Shown here one piece after another: positions 16,311-28,114 of a stretch of 64,000 nucleotides of DNA. A program made the translations under genes and the position numbers. The stretch is from Caecitellus pseudoparvulus (lineage: Eukaryota > Protista > Bigyra: Bicosoecida): contig CBFFRQ010000042.1 in assembly GCA_965644315.1 (NCBI GenBank), forward strand, positions 372,001 through 436,000. Reading direction: 5' to 3'. The notes beneath the pieces were generated by a model. It did no database searches. It saw nothing but the letters and a program-made list of their open reading frames with translations, and was not told the origin of the DNA. How positions within the stretch are numbered: position 1 is the first letter of the stretch; each line of letters begins with the position of its first letter.

Positions 16311-16650
16311 GGCTGTGCTTCGGGTTGGCCACTGGCTTTGCCCGGCAGACGCGCAGTCAGCAGGCAGCTGGCCGGCGGACTCGGGACAAACCACGCCGCG
16401 ACGGGCTCAAGGAATGGAGCTCGCTCACCAGGAGCACATGGAGCAAGGTGGCCATAAGCGTGCAATGTACATACATTACTGCAGGCACGAGATCGGGGGA
16501 CATTAAAATGCCTCTGATTACCACAGCGCGGCATGGAAGGCGACGAGCCTGTTTCACAACAAAAAGCACCCGGTGCGAGGCCCTGCAGCGGTGCTCTGGC
16601 TCGGCAAGACAGAAAGGCGTGAGACCGCATATCCTTGCACAGTGAACAGG

Positions 16651-18363
16651 CTAAGTCGCTTCATGCAGAGTTGCGAGAACGAATGCGGCGGCACCCTCTG
16701 TGGAGGCGATGGAGCCGTCAGCCAGGGTTCGCCACTCCAAGTCCACATCTGCGAGGAGCGGGTGCGCCACCGCCAGTCTTGGGTCCGTCACGCTCACCAA
16801 CGAGCTGGTTTCGTCATCAGAACTGCCCCCGTGCGCTGGCTGTAGCAGGAGCATGTCCTCAAACTCGGCCTTGCGCTGGGTAGCCTTCGCGACCACCGCC
16901 CGCCAATTCCTGCCCGTGACTCGCGCGCCTGTGCACAGATCTTCACCCTGGGCACCCATTTCATCAGGCGTCGGGCCTTTCCAGGTTATTTTCAACCGCA
17001 CTGACATGGGGTTCGTCGGGTACTCCACGGAGACGAAGGCCGCTGCCAGCTCAGGAGTGGACAGGACGAGCCAGTGTTTTTGGTGCCGCGGTGAGACATG
17101 CGGCTGCAGATTCAGCTCCACTGCCCTCACATAGTCCCGCGTCAGGGCCGCCATGAATGCGGAAGCTGCTCGCAGCTCCAGACGCCCCATGGGGGTGCGT
17201 GCCTTGGCGACCCACTCCCGAGAGCTTGCGTCATAGCGGACAAAGCGCTGAGCTGCTTGCGGGAGGGCAGCCAGCTCACTCGCCGCCTCCTCTGCTGACA
17301 AGCACGGACGCGTGGGCGGGGCCCGCGCCTCCGTGTGTGTGTCTTCATCCAGCTGAGGGGGTGTGGGCCGCTTGGCGCTGGTAGGTGGCAGCTGCGGGTC
17401 AGCGGTGCGCGTTCGTTTGCGTTTCGGCAGTGCGCAGGTTGGGTTGGGACCTGGCCGTGTCAGGAAGACGGAAACGTATCCTTTGAACGCTGCCGCAAAG
17501 CTGTGCGAGGAAAGGTCCATTCCGTGTGAGGCCCACCAGGCGTGGATGGTGCTTTCTAGCTCCGCGAGCTGGGCTGGCCACCGTGCGGCATGGAAAGGGA
17601 CCACCCACGCCACAGTGCTGGGCTCGGGCCCCGCCCATTCCACGCGGGACCACGGAGCCCAGTTGGGGAGTACAGCATGCATGCCAACCACAGGCACTAC
17701 GCTGGCGTGCAGGAAAGCCGCGGCCAGCTCTGGGAAGTGAGGCAAAGCCCACGGCGTGTCTGGGGCTTGCTCGACTGGGTTTGATGCGGACCAATGCACC
17801 GAACCGGGCTCTGCCAGCCCGCCCTGCCGGCCCCAGGAGCTTGCCACGCCCTGCACAGAGACGAGACTGCTATGAGATAGTGCTGTGGGCTCCCCCACCC
17901 CACTGGATGCGTCGCTGTCCCCGGCACAGGCTGCATCGGTTACAGGCGCCGCAGGGCACGGAGGCGAAGCGCCCTGCTGCATCCTGGCATAGTCACGCTG
18001 CAGCAGGGCCAGGAGGGCAGTCTTCCCATTCGCCCTGAGCACTTCTCTGCCGGAGCACGCCACGACTGCCACCCAGCGCTCAGTACTTGCGTCAAACCAG
18101 AGCTCATCCTCCCGACTCAAAGCGCTCGGCAGGTGCAGCACTTCACGCGCTGATTGTGAAGGGGCGGGGGTGAGGTGCAGCTCGGGCAGGCTTGGCAGCA
18201 GCTGGTACAATGAGGCAAAGTCTCGTTCACCCCCTTCCGGGTCTGGTTGTTTTGGGGTCAAAGTTTTGTGACCAGAAGACAACGCTGTGCCTGGCTTCTG
18301 CCTTGCCTGGGGCATACCGGCGCAGCTGCCCCACAGCCAGTCCTTCGAGGGAGAACCCGACAT
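16651..18363 (-). CDS. Hypothetical protein, paralogue A, with two copies of an AP2-like + WxGPxP domain
   Basis: Uninterrupted ORF of about 570 codons from ATG 18363. Internal repeats WFDASTERW..RDY..PELAAAF..WAGPEP and RYDASSREW..RDY..PELAAAF..WKGPTP. Confidence 0.75.
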   Translation of the reverse strand: MSGSPSKDWLWGSCAGMPQARQKPGTALSSGHKTLTPKQPDPEGGERDFASLYQLLPSLPELHLTPAPSQSAREVLHLPSALSREDELWFDASTERWVAVVACSGREVLRANGKTALLALLQRDYARMQQGASPPCPAAPVTDAACAGDSDASSGVGEPTALSHSSLVSVQGVASSWGRQGGLAEPGSVHWSASNPVEQAPDTPWALPHFPELAAAFLHASVVPVVGMHAVLPNWAPWSRVEWAGPEPSTVAWVVPFHAARWPAQLAELESTIHAWWASHGMDLSSHSFAAAFKGYVSVFLTRPGPNPTCALPKRKRTRTADPQLPPTSAKRPTPPQLDEDTHTEARAPPTRPCLSAEEAASELAALPQAAQRFVRYDASSREWVAKARTPMGRLELRAASAFMAALTRDYVRAVELNLQPHVSPRHQKHWLVLSTPELAAAFVSVEYPTNPMSVRLKITWKGPTPDEMGAQGEDLCTGARVTGRNWRAVVAKATQRKAEFEDMLLLQPAHGGSSDDETSSLVSVTDPRLAVAHPLLADVDLEWRTLADGSIASTEGAAAFVLATLHEAT

Positions 18364-19966
18364 GCTCCCCGCAGCAGACTGAACGTGGAAGGTGGTCAAT
18401 CCTGACGAGGCGGTGGCGCCGGCCTAGGCATGCAGCGGCCAAACGTGCCGTGATGGTGTGGGCGAGCGGAAATTGCCCTGCTCAAATGCCAGGCGCGCAG
18501 ATGCAGGGGAGAGGTACAGAGCACTGTCCCTGTCATGCGGGCACAGAGTGCCCAAAGGGCTATATGTGGAGTTGCAGGTCACGCTTTTTGAACAAAAGCT
18601 CGGCTTTCATCTCTGCGGCAGGCTGTATCGCCGGGCAGGTGAAGGGGGGGGGTGCTTGGCGATGCGCCGCTGGAACTCCACAGCACAACATGCGGCAGAG
18701 GGGGCGATGTTCAGTGGCGACAAGGGTCCTAGGCCATGATGTGGCGAAGGGTGCTTGACTCCCCAGCGCTGGTCCCTGCTGACTGGCTGTGCTCTTCGGT
18801 GTTTGGTTTGGGGATGTCTCCGCAGTGATCAGGTGATGTGGGGCCATATCAAACCGTCAGGCAGGCTTCTGCATGATGCGCAACAGGGCCTGCCAACCGA
18901 AAGGTCCTGAGTGGGCGAGCTCCAGGGAGGTTGCTACGGGGCCGCCTACGTCAACGCTTAGTATTCAACCTTGATTTGTGGGGGCTGAAGCCTGGCTCGA
19001 GCACCGGCCGGAAGTAGGGGTCAGAGCCAGCTTGGTGGGGTTGCGGATGTGCGGGGGGGATGCACCGCACAAGCTGCTCCAGCAGCCGCAGCGGGCAGAA
19101 GCTCCTTGCAGCAACAGATTCAGGGTAAGCCTTAAGGTTCGCGCCTCGATGTCTGCGTTTGAGGGATGCCGGAACCCGGAAAGAGCGCTGCTAGTTGCTG
19201 CATCAGAGGCTTGCCGCCACCCGCGGCTGACGCACGCTGAGTCCTCGCTGTTCGCCGCCCACGCCCCTGCTGCAGCCTCAAGTAAAGCAGGGGCTGCAAA
19301 AAAACATGCTTTGGGCGAGGTATGTGCCTCTCTGATCACAGATGCGCTTCATTCCCGCGCAAGGGCGCCCCAGGGAGCGGGCGCTCTCCGGACGTTTCTT
19401 CGATGCCCTTCGTCGTGGCGGCATGTGCCGCGGCCCCACTCCACACACGATGCCAAGGTCGCAGTGCCCCCGCTGGCACAACCCCAGCCCCAGCCCACCC
19501 ACACCACAACCAAAAACACCACCATACTACCCACTAAACTTTCTGGTGGGTGAATTCCCCCGCAGCGCTGCTGCCGAGTGCCTGCGCAATCCTGCTGCAG
19601 AGGTGTCATCTCTCCAGCACCAGGGGACAGTGATACTGCTGTCCATCCCCCTAGGCTCAAGCGCAGTCCTGCCCTGCTGACTTGACTCCCCAGCCCCCAA
19701 GTGCCACCCCAGGGCAGCTGCAGCAACTCTTGTTGCCTGACCGAAGTCTGCAGGGGCCCGCAAGGTGTGTGGCACCCGCAAGTGTCCGTAGACAGTGACG
19801 CTGCACTGCCCTTGTCACACCCAAAACTCGTGCAGTGCCGCACGTGCTGCTTGCCGGCTGCACAGCTCCGCCTGCGCACCCCCGAGTGGTTCTTCCCCGC
19901 AGGTTGTGGAACAGGTGTCTCTTGCTCAGGGACACGGCATCGAGAGTCGCGCTGCGGTCCAGGATC

Positions 19967-21877
19967 ATGCAAGGACCTGCCCAGCCGAGCTTGGCTCAGC
20001 CAACTGATGCAGCAGGAGCGGGAAGCGTCCCGCAGCTGTTTTGCTCAGCGTCCGCGCTGTCGTCCTGCAAACGCACCCCAGCTGTGATTGGGCTGCCTGC
20101 CGTCACCCACCTTGCAGGGTACGACCCCTGGGCAGAGGTGGCCAGCTGGGGCCGCTTCGACACCCCCGATGCCAACGCTGAGCTGGCGTGGCGTGTGGCC
20201 CGGTCACCGTCTCAGCCAGGACCGTCGTCCCGCAAACTTCTGGGCGGACATGGCGCGCAGGAAGCGACGACTTTCCATGAAGCGCAGCGCGTGGCCGCTC
20301 CTCCAGCACCACACCCCCCTTCTCCTCTGCGAGCTCAGCCGCGACACGCTCTCGGGCAGTTTGCGCAGCCGCCCACCCGTGCGGAGCCGCAAACTCTGGC
20401 CCTGCCAGGAGTAAGCACGGGACACTTTGAACCTGCCTCCGATGAAATCGCAACGTTGCCTGCGAGCTTCCAAGCAGCTTCTTCTCGTTCACTGGGGTAC
20501 AGGGTGTCGCGGCGCACATGGACGGCGCAGTACACCTTCACTCGCGGGCCGCTACGGCCGGGAGACTACGAGCCTCCGGTGTCCCTGGTGGGCTCGCGGC
20601 GTGGCCAGGCCTCCAAACGCGAGCGGGCCTCCCGCAGCGTCCTGGGCTGTACTGCCTTCATGGCATGCCTGCGGAGAGACTTTGATCGAATTTCCCGGGG
20701 GCTGCCGCCTCCCTCGAACTCGCACGCGGCAGTGGCCACGAACTGGCTGCTGCTGCAGTGCCCCGAGGCATTGGCTGCCTTTGCGACCCCAACTTCCAGC
20801 CCGGCGGCAGACAGTGCTGTCAGCACCTCGGCTGGCTTGCTTGGGCATCAGGCCTGCGATCCTCGCGTGCTGAGGAGGTCGCAGAAGCAGGCGGGGGGCG
20901 TCGACGATGCCTGTTGGCTCAGGTGGACTGGCCCCACTCCTGACCAACTGGAGGCGTTCGGCGCCATGCTGCACCCCCCCCGAAAGCCGTGCATGGATAA
21001 CTTCCTTGCCCTGCTGGAAGCCATGCACAGTAGCGGCTGGACCAGCGCAGCAGGTGGCGCCTCACAGGCCTTGGCCAAACAGGGTCAACTCAGCGAAGTG
21101 TGCCCCAGCCCGAACCTTGCAGCGCAGCAGCAGGGAAGGCTGGGATTCGGCCACACACCACCCTCACCTGCCGGTCAAGCAGGCCCAGGCATGCGACCTG
21201 GGAGCCTCTTTGCGGCGAAGGGGCAGCTGGGGCCCAGCTGCAGCTCTGCGGGCCCTTTCGACCCAACGCGCCTTGGCACCCAGCAGCCTGGCCTGCCCAC
21301 CGCAGAGCAACCCAGCAGCTTTATCCCAGTCAAGGGCAGTGAGCATCGCTTCTCCGCTCCCTCCATGCCACTCGGTGGAGTGCCCGGACCTGCCGTGTCT
21401 TTGCCCCTGCGCACACATGCCCATGTGGGCGGAGGCTCTGCGCTGAACCTCCCGCGCCCTATTGCCGAGTCAAATGTGGCGCAGGCCAGACAAACCCACA
21501 CAAGGCAGACTTCCCCTCCGTTCCAGCTCGTGGATGCCAGCCCGCGCTGGGCGCCTGTTGGGGACCCTGGAGATGCTGTGGGCACGGCAGAGGCGCCGCA
21601 AACGAAGCGTGGAGCTGGCTACCCTGCCCTGTGGCTGCAAGCCCTGCAGAGGGACTTCGCGCGGCTGCAGGCTGGTGCCCAACCCGCACACGACAGCGCT
21701 GATCCGTGGCTTGTCGCACAGGACCCGCTGGTCGCCGCAGCGTTTGTTTCCGTGGACCCCACCGGCGGCGTGTTGTGGACAGGCCCCACTCCGAACGTGG
21801 TGGATGCGGCCGCGGCGCAGCTGGGCATTCCCTTGACGCATGAAACTTGGCAGTATGTTCTTAATCACGCTGGATAG
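19967..21877 (+). CDS. Hypothetical protein, paralogue B, with one full and one partial copy of the same domain
   Basis: Long ORF with probable ATG at 19967. GYRVSRRTWTA..AFMACLRRDF..WLLLQCPEALAAF..WTGPTP and LQRDF..WLVAQDPLVAAAF..WTGPTP. Confidence 0.75.
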   Translation: MQGPAQPSLAQPTDAAGAGSVPQLFCSASALSSCKRTPAVIGLPAVTHLAGYDPWAEVASWGRFDTPDANAELAWRVARSPSQPGPSSRKLLGGHGAQEATTFHEAQRVAAPPAPHPPSPLRAQPRHALGQFAQPPTRAEPQTLALPGVSTGHFEPASDEIATLPASFQAASSRSLGYRVSRRTWTAQYTFTRGPLRPGDYEPPVSLVGSRRGQASKRERASRSVLGCTAFMACLRRDFDRISRGLPPPSNSHAAVATNWLLLQCPEALAAFATPTSSPAADSAVSTSAGLLGHQACDPRVLRRSQKQAGGVDDACWLRWTGPTPDQLEAFGAMLHPPRKPCMDNFLALLEAMHSSGWTSAAGGASQALAKQGQLSEVCPSPNLAAQQQGRLGFGHTPPSPAGQAGPGMRPGSLFAAKGQLGPSCSSAGPFDPTRLGTQQPGLPTAEQPSSFIPVKGSEHRFSAPSMPLGGVPGPAVSLPLRTHAHVGGGSALNLPRPIAESNVAQARQTHTRQTSPPFQLVDASPRWAPVGDPGDAVGTAEAPQTKRGAGYPALWLQALQRDFARLQAGAQPAHDSADPWLVAQDPLVAAAFVSVDPTGGVLWTGPTPNVVDAAAAQLGIPLTHETWQYVLNHAG

Positions 21878-22463
21878 ATCCTTTTCTCTCGGCTGAAGCC
21901 CGGCCAACTCGCTTGTTTCTCTGTATTTCGCCGCTGACAACGCAGCATCAGGCCGCATGCGCCCTCAAGGTGTTTGCCTAGGCTTCGTCCTGATGCTCAG
22001 CAGCTGTGAACTCTGGCGCAGAATTGTGAACACACACTGGCGCCTGCTTGCGTTGCGCCGATGCCTGTCTCAGGGGCGTTGGCAGCAGGAAGCCCGCTCA
22101 CGCTGGCCGCTTCCTGCAGTGTGTAGAGACCATGGGCTCCTCATGGGTCACCCCAGCCGGTGGCTGCAGCGACCACACCAAATTTCATAGCGTGCCCCCT
22201 TCCTTGAGCGAAGCAGGTGCGGTCCCTGCCAACGTGGTGTGCACGCTGCGAAATGGCAGGCACCTGCACCAGTGCCTCGAAGGATTGACACAAAGTGCCC
22301 GGGCACAGTTGCCAATCGCCGCAGCTTTTCCGCGCCCCACGGAAGACTCCGAGCCTCGTATATGTGCTCCACCTGCTTGCACTCCTGGCAGCGCTGAGAC
22401 AGCTTCCACGCAGCTGCTGAAGGAGCTGCGTTACACTCCCCCAGCGTTTCAAGCCTGCCTGGC

Positions 22464-23483
22464 ATGGCTGCACAGAACCTGCTCCCACGTGCCGCTATCA
22501 GCTTGCAAAGCTTAGAAACACGAGACACATGGCCCTCCATGAGCATTTCCAGGCCGCCGTTGCTCGATGAAGCGACTGTGCTGCAGTACGCGGTGTTGGG
22601 TCGGCCTGCTGTGAAGCGGGCAGCAAGCGCCATCGAGCCCGCTGCGCTGCAGCCGCATCAGCACGGCGGTCCCGGCCAGGCATCCACGCAAGCCCCGGGT
22701 TTGTTGCTGGGTGACCTTCCAGCGGTGCAGTTCCCGGCAGACTCGTGGCTCCCCTCCAGCATGTCTCCACTCGCCCGCCAAGCCGCTGTCTCTGCGTTGC
22801 AGCAGGCAGCCGCCAACTCGGCCGCTCTGGACGCAACGAGCACGCTTCCCCAGAGGCCTCGTAGAGCCCCCAAAGGTGTTGAAGCTGCATGGAGTGCGCT
22901 CCCCCAAAGTCTTCGGCAGTCAGATGTGGCCTTTGACAAGAAGCAGGGCATGTGGCGTTGCCGTGTCAAGCACCGCAACGGCAGCACCGTGGCCTCCAGC
23001 CGAAGCCTCCTCAGAGTGCTGATTCAACGGGACTTCTTGCAATTGCTGCCTGGGGGCTGGGTGCCAGCGCGGCCGGCCCGCCCTGGGCAGCCGCTGGCGG
23101 TGCTGGAGGTGAAGCTGCTCGCCCGCCTCTTCCTGAGCAGTGACCCCAGCAGTGAGTGCCCTCCTGGTGCCCTCCCCCTTCGGTGGACTGGGCCCGCTCC
23201 TGAAACACTGGATGCTCACGTTCCAGGCCAGGAAGAGCTGAACCTGAGCAACATTTCAGCCGCCGCGCGTGCCGCCCAGCAGCAAGCGGCACCACATGCA
23301 GAGCAGTCCTTGGAGGTGCAGCCACGTGGGCGGGCCACTGCCAGCCTGAACTTGCCGTTGTCTCCAGGAACGATGGGGGTGGTGCGCGCAGAAGCCACGG
23401 CTGCGTCCTTGCCCAGCCTCCGCGTGCTGCTGCAGAGCAGCCGGCCGACCATGTCCTTCATACAATCCGGCCCCGCACCATAA
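22464..23483 (+). CDS. Hypothetical protein, paralogue C, with one copy of the same domain
   Basis: ALPQSLRQSDVAFDKKQGMWRCRVKHRNG..LIQRDF..LLARLF..LRWTGPAP. The start codon is uncertain. Confidence 0.7.
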   Translation: MAAQNLLPRAAISLQSLETRDTWPSMSISRPPLLDEATVLQYAVLGRPAVKRAASAIEPAALQPHQHGGPGQASTQAPGLLLGDLPAVQFPADSWLPSSMSPLARQAAVSALQQAAANSAALDATSTLPQRPRRAPKGVEAAWSALPQSLRQSDVAFDKKQGMWRCRVKHRNGSTVASSRSLLRVLIQRDFLQLLPGGWVPARPARPGQPLAVLEVKLLARLFLSSDPSSECPPGALPLRWTGPAPETLDAHVPGQEELNLSNISAAARAAQQQAAPHAEQSLEVQPRGRATASLNLPLSPGTMGVVRAEATAASLPSLRVLLQSSRPTMSFIQSGPAP

Positions 23484-23563
23484 TCCAACCCTCTCCTGGA
23501 TTGCACTTGCCCGTGTGCGTCTGGCGACGCCGTGTCGCGGGCCTGCAATTGCAGTGCGGCGCC

Positions 23564-26500
23564 ATGGCGGCTCCCACGGTTCCCTTGCGTGTGCTGCTTC
23601 ACCACGTCGTGGACAGCTGCTATGAGGAGCTTGTGGCAGCTGGCCGCGATTTAGCCGGGGAGGACATCTCCAGCAGGCGCACAAAGACGTACCAGATGCT
23701 TTTTCGGCTCCGCCTTCGCATCACCAAGGCTGTGGCACTCGTGCGCCTGCTCAACCAAGGGCCAGCAACCGCGGAAATAGGAGCCAAGCACCAGGCGACA
23801 CTGCGGATGCAGCATGCCTGCAAGGCATTGGCGGGAGCAGGGGCACCGCTTGCCCACCCACTCACTGTAGGGCTGGGGCGCCATCTGCCTACAACTGATG
23901 CCGTGGCTGCCACGAGGCTGCTCATGGCTCAGCCCTTCTGGGAGCGGGTGACGGATGCGGCAGCGTCCGCGGCTCCTGTCAAGCCGCCTGTGCCGCCCCA
24001 CGCGCTGCCTCGGGAGGGGCATGCCTTCCTGCAAGCCGCCACAGACCCCACTAGCTGGTTGCACACAGCCTTGCGGCTTCGAGCGCCCCTGCAGACTCTG
24101 GAAACCCGCACCTGTGCAGCCCTGGCAGCCGCAAGTGCTGCCCCACCTGGGGCCACCCTGCAGGTCACGGGGGCCGCTGCGACGCTCCACAGAGAGGGCG
24201 TGTACGAAGTGCGCCTCGTGCCAGCCATGTACCCCCCCACTGCCGGCTCCTGCCCACGGGCTGCTTGGGGTGTGACGGACATCACCCAGGCCTTGCCAGG
24301 GCAGGGGGACTATGCCCGCACAGCCCTGACACGGAACCAGGTGCGACGGCTGGCGTACGGGCTGTCCCACCGCATTCGCCCCTTGGCACTGGACGCAGCG
24401 CTGGCCCTCCTGGACGAGTTCATGCGGCGCATGGTGGCTGGGACGACGCTGCTGGGCCTGGCTGCAGCGGCCACCAGCTTGGGCATCGCCGCCGCTGAGG
24501 CGGCACGCGGGCGAGGTGGGTCGCCGCATGCCGCCACAGTGCGCTTTGCCGGCGCCGCCTTGACGCCGCCCAGCGCCTGCCAGCGGCTGGTGGCGGCCCC
24601 AAGCGCCGCCGCCGTCCGGGAGGTGCTGCGTGGCGCCCGCCGCCACGCCCCACCGCTGCCCACTGCAGTGGACGTCTTGGCGAGCCACCGCGTCCGGCAG
24701 GCACAGGCCATGGCGGCGGGGTGCCTCCTCTTTGCAGTGGACACACTGCCGCTGCCAGGGGACAGCTCCTTGCCCTGGCCAGCTGAGTTGCGCCCGCGCC
24801 TGGGCCTGAGCGAGTGGGCCGACGACAGGCGGCCGCTGTACACATCCCTGGACGACCTGCTGGCCAGCTCCCTGGTCATCGCCCGTGCTGACGGTGCCAG
24901 CGCCATGCCATCCAAGGCTGCGCTGCCTGCACTGCTGGACACGCTGGCCTGTGGCGGTGTGGCCAGCCCGCCCGTGAGGTTGACCGGGCGAGGGGGGGAG
25001 GCGTCCGCCCTGCCCCAGGCGGCAGTGGCGGCCATGCCCACCCCCCTGCCTGCAGCGCTGGCCTGCGTGCACACGTCGCATGCTGCGCCAGACACGGTGT
25101 GCTGGACGTGGTGGGGGGCGCAGGGAGCGGTGCAGGCCGCCTTCCCCACCGCCGAGGCGCCTAGTTTGAGCGAGGCGCTGGGCTTGGCGGTGGCCGTGGC
25201 ACGGCCAGCTCTGCCGCCACAGCCGGCGCCCACAGCAGGCCCGCGCTTGGTGCAGTGCCCTGCAGGTGCCTGGCGCCCCCCCGACCCCCGGCAGGCAGGC
25301 GCAGCCTTGGCAGCCTTCACTGTGGACGGGCGAGGTGTGCGGAGGCAGCGCCTGCGCAAGCGAGCGCGCACGACCACTGGGCAGGGAGCTGCCGTGTCTG
25401 CTGCCTCCAACCCAGGCCATGCACCGACCTTCGTCGATGAGGTAAAGGGGCAAGTACCATACGCCCTGCTGGGGGACCGAGCGGCAGCAGTGCTGGCGGC
25501 TGTGCTGCCGACCTGGGGCGTGGAGCAGGAGGGGGCCCACCCTCATGTGCTGGCGGGGGCTCAGGCACTTGTGGCCGGCCTGCAGCCACACCTGCACAGT
25601 GCCCTGCTGCATGCGTGTGTGGCGTGGGAACGGTACGCCGCTGGCGCCATGCCACACGCGCTTGACAAGGTGCTGCAGGGGGCGGCGGGAGGCCAGCACT
25701 GGTCTGCGCCAGCGACACCCTGGGGGGAGCTGGACCCCGTCCCTGCAGGCATCCTCGCCTTCTTCGAGGCGTCCCCAGAGTCAGTGGGCGCACCGCTCCC
25801 ACTGCAGCAGTGCAGCCTGTCCCTGCCGGCGGACGCCCCGGCCTTTGCTGTCCAGGCGCAACGTGAAGCGGCGAAGGCAGCAGGTGCGCTGGACGAGTGC
25901 TTGCCTCGCATTGTGAACAACGCCTTGTTCCGCCTGGTCACGGTGGCTGCGCGGTGTGGCGCGGCGGCGGCCGTGGACAGTCTGCAGTGGGTGCACGCGG
26001 GTACGTCTGCACCCTGGACGGCCCCAGCAGCCCTGCTGGCCACCGCTGTGCGCCACGCGCGCGAGGTGTGGCAGGGGCACGTCAGCACCCAGCAGGTCCT
26101 TTCCGGCACGCCAGCCATGCTGCTGCGCTCAAGCGGCCTCCGCAGCGCTGCAGGCCGCGCCTTCCTTGGCGCCTTCCTCTCCACGGGCCAGGCTGCAGTG
26201 CAGCACTGCGCTCTGCGCTGCGCAGAACTCCTGATCCTGCAGCGCTCGCTGGGGGACGCCCTGGGTGCGCCAGCTCCAGAGCTCCCCGCGAACGTACTTG
26301 GCCCGGTGACAGTCCCGAGCTCCGTCGCACCACCTGCATTTGGGGTGCAGGTCGCCCAGGCCCAGCTGCCCTTGCACCTGCACCTGCACCCTGGCCAGGT
26401 GCACCTGAGACTGCACTCCATGTGCACTGCCCAGACCACCTGCACAGTGCTCAAGACATTGCCCGGGGACAAGGCCAGCGCGGGCGACGCCCGCGGCCCC

Positions 26501-28114
26501 GGTATGTTGGCTGGGCCCAGCCTAGCTCGGGCCCTGTGCCTGGATGTGGAAGCTGGGAAGGCGCTGGAGTCCCCTCTGGCACGTGGCTTTGTGGGGCACT
26601 TGTTGAGCAGGCACCAAGGCACGCCAAGCCAGTGGCTGGTGCTGCGGGCGCCCAACCGCAGCCTTCAAGACACGCCTGACCGGCCTACGCCAATGGCACC
26701 AGCCAACCAAGCGCCTTCAAGGCTGTCATCGCTCCTGCCCTCTCTGCACGATGCGACTAAGGCGGTCAAGCGCACAGAGACGGGGGGCGGCGGGCGGGCC
26801 CGGCATGCACCATCAGGGGGGCCCTCCACCTCCCCAGTGCTGGACTCCATGTCCACACTACCCGTCGCCCTGCCAGCAAAGGCCGTCAAGTCCATTTCGC
26901 GACTGCTGGCCAAGACACTCCTGTGCACCTTGCCCTCTGACAGCGCAACGGAGCAGCTTGTAACGGCCATGGCGCCGCAGCTGGCCGCCGTCACGAGCCA
27001 GTGGCGGGACACCCTGGAGCTGGCTGCAAGCACCAGCATTTGTACTGAAGCAGAGGTACCTCCCGCCCTCCTTGCTGCCAAGCAGCTGGGCTGCAAGTCC
27101 ATGCTGGTGCTGCCGTTGCCAGTGGAGTTGTTGGTGCAGCAGCGTGAGCAGCGTGGCCTGCATGTGAGGGTGCTGCGCTTGCTTGCCGAGGCAGCCAGCC
27201 AGGCAGGGGCAGTGGCCTTGGCAGTGCTTCCACAGGGTGCCTCTGTGGCCGCCAAGGCCTGGGTGGCCGCCGCCACGCAGCCCCAGCAGCTGGACTGCCA
27301 CAACGGCGGCGCTTGGCCGTTGCCCGTCCTCATCGCGCCCACGGCGCTGCACGCTGACCTGCTGCAGCAAGCAGCCCTTGCCCCTTCCATCGTGGCCTTT
27401 GCCAGGGCTTGGGGCCACGGCCAGCGCACGAAAGAGGTCCGTGTTGAGAACTACCTGCTGGACCGTGCACGGAAGCAGCAGGCAGCGAGCGGCGCTGCCG
27501 TTGACCAGGGCACGCACGGTCCAGTGCCAAAGGCCCCACCGCCCCTCCCGGAGGGATTGGAGCTTGTCCTGCCCCCTGGGTGGGCGTGGGGGAAGCAAGA
27601 CGTCCAGCGCACACTGCCTCAAGTGGTCCTGAACGTGTCTGGTAGCAGGGGCCGCTTCAAGCAGACTTTGCAGTGCGCCTTGGTACACGATAGGGTTGTG
27701 GTGCCTTGCGCCCCTGCTGCCCTCCTCCTAGCCCCACGTGTCGTGCTTCCCCGTGAGGATTTGACCCCTGCACAGAGTGACGCGTCGGTGGCGCTGGGCG
27801 TGCTCAAGCAGGTGCAGACGGCAGAGCTGCTGCACGCCACGCGGGCTGCTATCCGCCGCGCCCAGGCCCAGCAAGCGCTGCAGGACGAGGGCTTCGTGGT
27901 GACCCCGCAGGGCGACCAGCTTGCCGTCGCGGGCCTGGGCTCCCTGCAGCCAGGCTTGGCAAGGGCTATCCCAGCTCACCTTGCGTCAGGGGCAGCGGGC
28001 CTGCCCCACATTCAGCATGTTCGCGCCCAGGTGTCAATCGCGATGAACGGCGACATGAACGTGACTGGCTCAGGGGTTGGCATCTTGCAGGCATTCCTAG
28101 GCACGGGTCAATAG
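23564..28114 (+). CDS. MED14: Mediator subunit 14-like protein (divergent, single exon, about 1516 aa)
   Basis: N-terminus VPLRVLLHHVVDSCYEELV...RRTKTYQMLFRLRLRITKAVALVR matches the Med14 N-terminal pattern, and the length is typical. The remainder is not recognisable by eye. Confidence 0.65.
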   Translation: MAAPTVPLRVLLHHVVDSCYEELVAAGRDLAGEDISSRRTKTYQMLFRLRLRITKAVALVRLLNQGPATAEIGAKHQATLRMQHACKALAGAGAPLAHPLTVGLGRHLPTTDAVAATRLLMAQPFWERVTDAAASAAPVKPPVPPHALPREGHAFLQAATDPTSWLHTALRLRAPLQTLETRTCAALAAASAAPPGATLQVTGAAATLHREGVYEVRLVPAMYPPTAGSCPRAAWGVTDITQALPGQGDYARTALTRNQVRRLAYGLSHRIRPLALDAALALLDEFMRRMVAGTTLLGLAAAATSLGIAAAEAARGRGGSPHAATVRFAGAALTPPSACQRLVAAPSAAAVREVLRGARRHAPPLPTAVDVLASHRVRQAQAMAAGCLLFAVDTLPLPGDSSLPWPAELRPRLGLSEWADDRRPLYTSLDDLLASSLVIARADGASAMPSKAALPALLDTLACGGVASPPVRLTGRGGEASALPQAAVAAMPTPLPAALACVHTSHAAPDTVCWTWWGAQGAVQAAFPTAEAPSLSEALGLAVAVARPALPPQPAPTAGPRLVQCPAGAWRPPDPRQAGAALAAFTVDGRGVRRQRLRKRARTTTGQGAAVSAASNPGHAPTFVDEVKGQVPYALLGDRAAAVLAAVLPTWGVEQEGAHPHVLAGAQALVAGLQPHLHSALLHACVAWERYAAGAMPHALDKVLQGAAGGQHWSAPATPWGELDPVPAGILAFFEASPESVGAPLPLQQCSLSLPADAPAFAVQAQREAAKAAGALDECLPRIVNNALFRLVTVAARCGAAAAVDSLQWVHAGTSAPWTAPAALLATAVRHAREVWQGHVSTQQVLSGTPAMLLRSSGLRSAAGRAFLGAFLSTGQAAVQHCALRCAELLILQRSLGDALGAPAPELPANVLGPVTVPSSVAPPAFGVQVAQAQLPLHLHLHPGQVHLRLHSMCTAQTTCTVLKTLPGDKASAGDARGPGMLAGPSLARALCLDVEAGKALESPLARGFVGHLLSRHQGTPSQWLVLRAPNRSLQDTPDRPTPMAPANQAPSRLSSLLPSLHDATKAVKRTETGGGGRARHAPSGGPSTSPVLDSMSTLPVALPAKAVKSISRLLAKTLLCTLPSDSATEQLVTAMAPQLAAVTSQWRDTLELAASTSICTEAEVPPALLAAKQLGCKSMLVLPLPVELLVQQREQRGLHVRVLRLLAEAASQAGAVALAVLPQGASVAAKAWVAAATQPQQLDCHNGGAWPLPVLIAPTALHADLLQQAALAPSIVAFARAWGHGQRTKEVRVENYLLDRARKQQAASGAAVDQGTHGPVPKAPPPLPEGLELVLPPGWAWGKQDVQRTLPQVVLNVSGSRGRFKQTLQCALVHDRVVVPCAPAALLLAPRVVLPREDLTPAQSDASVALGVLKQVQTAELLHATRAAIRRAQAQQALQDEGFVVTPQGDQLAVAGLGSLQPGLARAIPAHLASGAAGLPHIQHVRAQVSIAMNGDMNVTGSGVGILQAFLGTGQ

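Follow-up and report, generated by a model that had tools for sequence, protein, structure and literature searches.

Three neighbouring genes of the marine flagellate Caecitellus pseudoparvulus, here called A, B and C, encode proteins that share a module of ~150 aa with a predicted AP2-like first third and a conserved C-terminal extension. They lie within a 64,000-nucleotide stretch of contig CBFFRQ010000042.1, the whole of which is referred to here as the window. A, B and C are members of an undescribed family confined to a small set of stramenopile flagellates with GC-rich genomes. The analysis produced a family-level HMM and a confident structural model, and it found ten module copies in the genome and ~30 member proteins worldwide.

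The coordinates of all three ORFs were verified in the window. Gene A (16651..18363, minus strand) is an intronless ORF of 570 aa, counted from the first ATG, whose product carries a basic patch, KRKR, and has a conserved acidic tail at its C-terminus. Its protein has 99%-identical metagenome copies (P0001/P0004) and an orthologue, P0002, at 32% identity. Gene B (19967..21877, plus strand) encodes 636 aa, again counted from the first ATG, and gene C (22464..23483, plus strand) encodes 339 aa; their near-identical metagenome counterparts are P0006 and P0017, respectively. A non-coding, divergent spacer of 1.6 kb (18364..19966) separates A from B, and the ATG of a Med14 gene lies ~80 nt downstream of the gene C stop codon. 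The spacers matched no Rfam family and their repeats are short and two-copy only. No spliced gene model was required, and the candidate poly(A) signal AAUGCA was absent from the 300 nt following each of the three ORFs.

Module copies were placed with the family HMM (HMM A3), which detected two copies in A, two in B and one in C at domain E-values of 4e-22 to 3e-42. Copy A1 (A aa 74-280, 17524..18144, minus strand; E 3.9e-30) has its halves separated by an insertion of ~60 aa. Copy A2 (A aa 363-510, 16834..17277, minus strand; E 2.9e-42) is the most compact and best conserved. In gene B, copy B1 (aa 160-362, 20444..21052, plus strand; E 7.3e-34) carries insertions within the sheet and ahead of the WxGPxP motif. 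Copy B2 (aa 546-635, 21602..21871, plus strand; E 4.1e-22) covers HMM positions 36-139 only and is thus detectable from the helix onward, in agreement with its having been called partial; against an HMM of the N-half, its helix alone was matched (E 5e-5). The single copy in gene C, C1, spans aa 142-287 (22887..23324, plus strand; E 1.4e-31). Pairwise BLASTP in a three-sequence database aligned A and B collinearly over 427 aa (E 1e-11) and gave E-values of 1e-6 for A and C and 7e-6 for B and C. The matches were therefore significant both by BLASTP and with the HMM built from aligned copies, confirming the three ORFs and five shared copies reported in the preliminary description.

To define the conserved residues, we used an alignment of 35 module copies from at least 20 proteins. 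The W, G, P and P of W100-x-G102-P103-x-P105 were invariant in 35/35 copies, and high conservation was also observed for W23 (97%), P60 (97%), L46 (94%), D49 (94%), R52 (91%), W70 (89%), the LP pair (79-93%) and F82 (77%). The consensus originally proposed was correct. The true end of the module lies ~40 aa further towards the C-terminus than had been marked, and the added stretch comprises two further helices in which N125-W126 and A133 are conserved. The family-defining pattern of W23, L46, D49, R52, P60, W70, F82 and W-x-G-P-x-P was found in the five window copies and in the ten copies of the genome. The net charge of the N-half was positive in 16 of 17 copies, with a mean of +4.6, and that of the C-half was approximately neutral. 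The helix (L46, D49, R52) and the extension (P60, W-x-G-P-x-P), both outside the presumed DNA-contacting sheet, were the most strongly conserved parts, and the Arg positions of the sheet varied among copies.

The ten copies in the genome are distributed over seven ORFs at three loci, with five copies in four ORFs at the two loci outside the window cluster. When 1.84 billion representative proteins were searched exhaustively with the HMM, only 31 family members were returned, all of them unannotated metagenome or assembly proteins. The family is thus restricted by lineage, as had been supposed, but it is not confined to the cluster. Pfam gave nothing at E<=1 for the whole proteins A, B and C and nothing relevant at E<=10 for the 35 module copies. 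No enzymatic or other Pfam domain was found in A, B, C and ten full-length relatives; in some of the relatives a coiled coil is present at the N-terminus. Neither PHROGs nor a PDB sequence profile search matched the family, and a literature search on stramenopile AP2 and lineage-specific transcription factors yielded no description of the module. The initial description of the domain as unrecognised thus holds against Pfam, PHROGs and the PDB sequence profile.

In a domain tree, A2, B1 and probably C joined different orthologue groups from other organisms, so that the clustered genes are old paralogues rather than recent tandem copies. The earlier term "tandemly expanded" is accordingly only half correct. 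Copy B1 grouped with the subfamily of contig C44 (support 96/86), and copy C1 grouped weakly with a 359-aa subfamily, P0020/29/32 (support 86/88). Pairwise BLAST did not establish C and P0020 as orthologues (E 0.08), orthology being suggested only by synteny and the weak tree node. A related assembly holds only an A-like and one C-like gene, which adjoin each other. Orthologues retain the two-module order and an adjoining metaxin-like gene; identity to orthologues was 51-53% for copy A2 and 39% for the metaxin-like neighbour. In two organisms the family loci are syntenic, single-copy and flanked by housekeeping genes.

Copy A2 was used for structure modelling. AF2 returned a model with a pLDDT of 93.8 and a pTM of 0.86 from a 14-row alignment, and the per-block pLDDT was 94-98 over residues 1-110. 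Strands were predicted at residues 14-17, 22-29 and 32-38, followed by a helix at 41-55, which is the AP2/ERF topology of a three-stranded antiparallel sheet on one C-terminal helix. A Foldseek search of the PDB matched 1gcc_A (49 aa, rmsd 2.4) and the Toxoplasma gondii mitoribosomal protein 9hqv_Yn (probability 0.77). In the ESM Atlas, the best structure match was a plant AP2/ERF cluster, with phage HNH-AP2 and integrase clusters ranking next; the feature search of the same resource gave no usable match. AP2/ERF and HNH-AP2 proteins dominated the BFVD list (probability 0.9-1.0, rmsd 1.5-2.8, 43-53 aa). Structural match scores were middling overall. The three-strand-plus-helix N-half first suggested from sequence is thus predicted with high confidence, and domains of the AP2/ERF type are its recurrent best matches in the PDB, BFVD and ESM Atlas.

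Kinship of the N-half with AP2 at the level of sequence is borderline. Using hhalign, the N-half aligned with six AP2 domains of the same genome over 47 columns (P 5e-4, probability 31%), in a register that places W on W, AA on AA and D on D. W23 thereby coincides with the Trp of the genome's own AP2 domains, and D49 with the Asp in the "RAYD" helix of AP2 domains. In controls, the score was reached by only one of 200 column shuffles, and P was 0.42 with the columns reversed. None of the 35 module copies matched Pfam PF00847, even at E<=10; six other ORFs of the genome match it at 23-32 bits, just below the cut-off.

The remaining 95 residues of the model form short helices, a two-stranded hairpin that terminates in the invariant W-x-G-P-x-P, and a helical hairpin with the conserved NW, and together with the first third they are predicted to make up a single compact domain. 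These C-terminal two thirds, W-x-G-P-x-P included, had no counterpart among known structures. As in the preliminary description, which recognised no family for the C-half, structure searches with this part gave no recognisable fold. Its identification as an integrase core-binding domain was rejected because no integrase was present among the matches of the C-half modelled alone.

Since the first third of the module (~residues 12-55 of A2) is predicted to adopt the AP2/ERF-type sheet-plus-helix fold, we reasoned that A, B and C may well be lineage-restricted regulators that bind DNA, their modules pairing a divergent AP2-type core with a novel extension, a reading we hold with about even confidence. 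The proteins would be nuclear and bind DNA sequence-specifically, the Arg/Trp-bearing sheet reading the major groove in the manner of AtERF1. The extension, specific to the lineage, could stabilise the core or supply contacts or partners, and the two-module proteins A and B might read bipartite sites like the two-repeat plant AP2 proteins. Long disordered regions, KRKR-type basic patches and conserved acidic tails, the latter two read by eye only, may act in nuclear import and in activation or the recruitment of partners.

Some AP2-like folds bind RNA or protein, however, and this counts against a regulatory role: the T. gondii chains among the best matches belong to a ribosome and not to a DNA-bound complex. 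The module could instead be a lineage-specific protein- or RNA-binding scaffold in which the conserved helix and the W-x-G-P-x-P surface form the functional site, the three-strand-plus-helix start being merely a common small motif. The position of the strongest conservation beyond the sheet, the middling structural scores and the absence of a Pfam AP2 signal are consistent with such a scaffold. In contrast, four independent libraries were dominated by AP2-type domains rather than by mixed small alpha/beta motifs, the profile-profile alignment with AP2 is in register, and the N-half is consistently basic. We consider a scaffold rather unlikely.

The nearest shapes include a tyrosine-integrase cluster and HNH-AP2 proteins of phages, which raises another alternative: the module might derive from a mobile element, as a domesticated DNA-binding domain (of an integrase arm-binding type or from an HNH-AP2 homing endonuclease) that has lost its catalytic partner, and the genes would then control such elements and not ordinary transcription. 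This is improbable, given that no integrase, HNH or transposase domain was found in A, B, C, the ten whole relatives or the 35 copies, that the C-half alone lacked an integrase core-binding match, and that the syntenic, single-copy loci hold old paralogue groups that are orthologous between organisms.

A, B and C are real, fast-evolving protein genes. Compared with the 98.7%-identical population variant L005, the three ORFs had 8-19 differing sites per kb and the spacers 26-36 per kb, indicating purifying selection on the genes relative to the spacers. The A-B spacer had 35.6 differences per kb and indels of 1, 2 and 3 nt; the only indel inside an ORF, in gene B, was of 3 nt and in frame. Synonymous and non-synonymous codon changes numbered 8:6 in A, 16:17 in B and 5:3 in C. 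Although a GC content of ~65% gives many long spurious ORFs on both strands, the idea that A, B and C are chance open frames with compositional repeats is refuted by six-frame genome searches reaching HMM E-values of 1e-56, by orthologues at 32-53% identity in other assemblies, by the polymorphism data and by the very confident AF2 model obtained from the 14-row alignment.

To our knowledge, almost no transcription factors have been characterised in heterotrophic stramenopile flagellates. More tentatively, the module may be a composite DNA-binding domain of a new type, in which an AP2-type core is permanently fused to an unprecedented fold. It would mark an independent, lineage-specific transcription-factor family of bicosoecid-like stramenopile flagellates, a counterpart on a small scale of ApiAP2 in apicomplexans, and W-x-G-P-x-P would represent a mode of recognition, of DNA or of a partner, absent from all described AP2 proteins. 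If the extension is a new fold that alters how the AP2 core reads DNA, the module would constitute a new branch of the AP2/integrase DNA-binding superfamily and a further instance in which this fold was independently recruited as a lineage-specific regulator. Should DNA binding fail, the family would still offer a clear case of an orphan domain that is restricted to one taxon and well defined in structure.

Compared with the AP2/ERF domains (PF00847) of AtERF1 (solved GCC-box binding domain, 1GCC/2GCC), WRINKLED1 (7WQ5) and TEM1 (7ET4), the module has the same predicted strand-strand-strand-helix order over ~55 residues, a basic sheet whose second strand bears a conserved Trp, and a helix whose AA...D is in register with the RAYD element. 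It occurs in one or two copies per protein, as in the ERF-type and AP2-type plant factors. Unlike these domains, it fails the Pfam model completely, lacks the YRG element, tolerates large insertions inside the sheet and between its halves, and always continues from the core into the conserved extension of ~95 residues (W70, F82, W-x-G-P-x-P, NW). It is also limited to a narrow stramenopile group, which has separate, more canonical AP2 domains as well. The T. gondii mitoribosomal chains (9HQV chain Yn, 9I05 chain Xn) are possibly AP2-type, as read from their rank beside AP2 entries, their titles being silent on this. Phage HNH-AP2 homing endonucleases and integrase arm-binding domains (lambda Int, Tn916 Int N-terminal) share the small DNA-binding fold predicted for the module, whereas the members of this family lack HNH or recombinase domains, are encoded by eukaryotic nuclear genes in conserved synteny and have an extension that, by the searches run, is unrelated to the integrase core-binding domain. 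In the ApiAP2 proteins of Apicomplexa, divergent modules of the AP2 fold have multiplied within the lineage, in long and otherwise low-complexity proteins. We know of no C-terminal W-x-G-P-x-P extension in ApiAP2 proteins; their domains, unlike these modules, are recognised by Pfam AP2, and the family described here is small, with seven genes in the genome. Both, however, appear to comprise divergent AP2-fold modules that expanded within one protist lineage in long, low-complexity proteins.

The three neighbouring genes lie at 16651-18363 on the minus strand (gene A, 570 aa counted from the first ATG), 19967-21877 on the plus strand (gene B, 636 aa, likewise) and 22464-23483 on the plus strand (gene C, 339 aa, likewise), where the preliminary description had placed its three ORFs. 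The significant mutual alignment of their shared copies, which its reading requires, was borne out by BLASTP among the three proteins, with E values of 1e-11 for A-B (collinear across 427 aa), 1e-6 for A-C and 7e-6 for B-C. The shared module was defined by aligning the window copies with orthologous copies (alignments A1, A2 and A3, labels separate from those of the copies). It spans ~150 residues and starts with LP, 10-15 residues, W23 (module numbering), a loop, a third strand, S-x-F-x(3)-L46-x(2)-D49-[YF]-x-R52 and P60, followed by a variable insert, W70-[LV]-x-L, P-E-L-x(3)-F82 and another variable insert, and it ends with W100-x-G-P-x-P105, a helix, N125-W126 and a helix finishing near A133. 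W100, G102, P103 and P105 are invariant across 35 copies. The mean net charge of the N-half is +4.6 (positive in 16 of 17 copies), and the C-half is neutral. HMM placement located the copies at 17524-18144 (A1) and 16834-17277 (A2) in gene A, 20444-21052 (B1) and 21602-21871 (B2) in gene B, and 22887-23324 (C1) in gene C. The copy positions and consensus first reported were right, except that the module reaches further C-terminally than was marked. B2 was detected by HMM from the helix onward only. Upstream of B2, a 'QLVDASPRWAPV' stretch is similar by eye to strands 1-2 of A1, a similarity that is not significant.

No described family fits these proteins, as had been supposed. Pfam gave no match to any of the three at E<=1, nothing relevant for 35 module copies at E<=10, and nothing relevant for ten full-length relatives except weak coiled-coil matches in one of them (P0024); PHROGs, the PDB sequence profile and the ESM Atlas feature search gave no match. 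When 1.84 billion representative proteins were searched exhaustively with hmmsearch, only 31 passed E<=1e-3, and all 13 members whose source records were examined are unnamed or 'hypothetical', their sources being metagenomes or a single, highly fragmented assembly at NCBI. Six-frame HMM searches of this genome revealed ten copies in seven ORFs, namely A, B and C, three ORFs at C44:336-344 kb and one of 820 aa with two modules at C67:499.5-502 kb.

Copy A2 was modelled with AlphaFold2 from a shallow, 14-row alignment (pLDDT 93.8, pTM 0.86). The predicted elements are H8-11, E14-17, E22-29, E32-38, H41-55, H64-67, H71-74, H76-82, E83-86, E97-100 (with W100 at its end), H105-115 and H126-146. 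For the first 55-80 residues, AP2-type domains either ranked best or kept recurring in every structure library searched. Foldseek against the PDB matched T. gondii mitoribosomal proteins (probability up to 0.77) along with TEM1, AtERF1 (49 aa, rmsd 2.4), ERF96 and WRINKLED1; in the ESM Atlas, a plant AP2/ERF cluster came top, followed by phage HNH-AP2 proteins and by a tyrosine-integrase cluster; and BFVD returned AP2/ERF and HNH-AP2 proteins (probability 0.9-1.0, rmsd 1.5-2.8, 43-53 aa). No single structural score is convincing by the tools' own yardsticks, and the argument is one of consistency across libraries. Together with the predicted three strands and helix, these recurrent matches support the earlier proposal that the N-half is AP2-like. 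The C-terminal two thirds modelled alone, again from a shallow alignment (38 rows), kept the same elements (pLDDT 79) and gave no Foldseek match in the PDB at E<=1e-3. On this modelling, they appear to form an extension whose fold is not recognisable at the available sensitivity, which is not proven novel.

The genome also contains more canonical AP2 domains in six ORFs (L019-L024; C17:8347-8475, C46:40741-40890, C96:135781-135933, C96:351283-351429, C69:540708-540845 and C18:1192196-1192321), with the consensus GVSW..S.RW.A.I.H.G.R..LG.Y.T..EAA.A.D. All six score 23-32 bits, just below the Pfam cut-off of 33.3 bits; the organism therefore has a second AP2 set, conventional-looking yet divergent. 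Aligning the N-half (A5) with these six domains (A4) by hhalign gave P 5e-4 and a probability of 31% over 47 columns, with W23 paired to the AP2 strand-2 Trp, D49 to the RAYD Asp and AA to AA. Among 200 column shuffles just one scored as high, and the reversed alignment gave P 0.42.

In a maximum-likelihood tree of 36 module copies, A2 grouped with the related proteins P0002/7/8 (support 99/98), B1 with the C44 copies and P0013-15/18 (96/86), and C1 weakly with P0020/29/32 (86/88). Of the C67 copies, C67_2 grouped with P0010/11/22 (99/97) and C67_1 with P0010/11, nested in a wider group to which coiled-coil proteins also belong (99/97). Since the window copies fall in separate orthologue groups, A, B and C are old paralogues; a more recent duplication is suggested for C44a and C44c alone (100/98). 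On the related scaffold L004, the gene resembling A is the divergent neighbour of a C-like gene of 359 aa, with no B counterpart between them. There the Med14 C-terminus (L004:18-905) runs convergently toward the C-like gene, whereas in the window Med14 (23564-28114) lies downstream of C in the same orientation; this change beside the cluster is a local inversion or rearrangement. The related metagenome contig L028 carries P0025 (1781-3784; coiled coil, single module) and P0011 (10001-12472; two modules) 6 kb apart. The gene that comes next is the WD40 gene also found after this genome's C67 member. An HMM search of this genome found no P0025-like copy.

The window (C42:372001-436000) belongs to a 30.6-Mb genome in 215 contigs and has a GC content of 61-75% in 2-kb windows. 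Genes for Med14, SAP18, Sec1, a ribosomal L17-type protein and a metaxin-like GST_C_6 protein, together with 18S arrays, identify the source as eukaryotic. Five full 18S copies of only ~1,697 nt each are spaced ~8.45 kb apart at C81:462535-506238, and a fragmented copy comes after them; C91 holds further fragments and C213 a divergent copy. Only ~80 nt (23483-23564) separate the stop of C from the first ATG of Med14 (1,5xx aa, same strand), so the 3' end of C and the Med14 promoter/5' UTR must overlap or be extremely short. The hexamer AATGCA, a candidate poly(A) signal, was not found in the 300 nt downstream of A, B or C (16351-16650, 21878-22177 and 23484-23783). In the divergent A-B spacer, the 14-mer CTTGACTCCCCAGC occurs exactly twice (18754-18767 and 19681-19694, 927 nt apart), which may reflect chance or a common promoter element; the remaining spacer repeats are short and imperfect.

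Compared with the metagenome scaffold L005 (98.7% identity across 21.7 kb), A, B and C differ by 8.2, 18.8 and 8.8 changes per kb and the two spacers by 35.6 and 25.6. Spacer indels are of 1, 2 or 3 nt, and the sole indel within an ORF is of 3 nt. Synonymous to non-synonymous codon changes number 8:6 in A, 16:17 in B and 5:3 in C, against 38:8 in Med14 and 8:1 in Sec1, and selection is therefore purifying but relaxed, as is common among regulators that evolve fast. In another assembly (L004), the orthologue of A, P0002 (679 aa, 32% identity, 87% coverage), adjoins the same metaxin-like gene as A does. This adjoining gene shows 39% identity between the two organisms, and the A2 module 51-53% to its orthologues, so A2 is more strongly conserved than its housekeeping neighbour.

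Collectively, the models suggest that the module forms a single compact domain, which starts as an AP2-type fold and continues into a conserved extension. The basic sheet of the N-half would bind DNA, and the extension could act as a stabiliser or provide added specificity or a partner surface. The most strongly conserved residues, L46, D49, R52, P60, W70, F82 and W-G-P-P, belong to the helix or the extension, a placement that would suit an interface between the two parts. Two-module proteins might achieve bipartite recognition, and KRKR-type patches and acidic conserved tails may serve nuclear import and activation. One such tail lies outside the module at A aa 520-570 (~16651-16805), with the motif D-S-D-A-E-S-L..S-E-P-H...AAAF-L-L, and is conserved in P0002, P0003, P0007 and P0008. 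A second, 'EYEE[DN]P-[DE]-LAIDSIASLLG' (also cited as 'EYEEDP-LAIDSIASLLG'), forms the extreme C-terminus in the 359-aa subfamily P0020/P0029/P0032/P0033; gene C has no EYEE-type tail. The best place for the module is inside the AP2/integrase DNA-binding fold group, as a new variant restricted by taxon; it is neither a Pfam AP2 member nor a categorically new kind of system. Compared with AP2/ERF proteins, its start is predicted to work like an AP2/ERF-type domain, whereas the module falls outside the sequence definition of that family and invariably has an additional conserved part.
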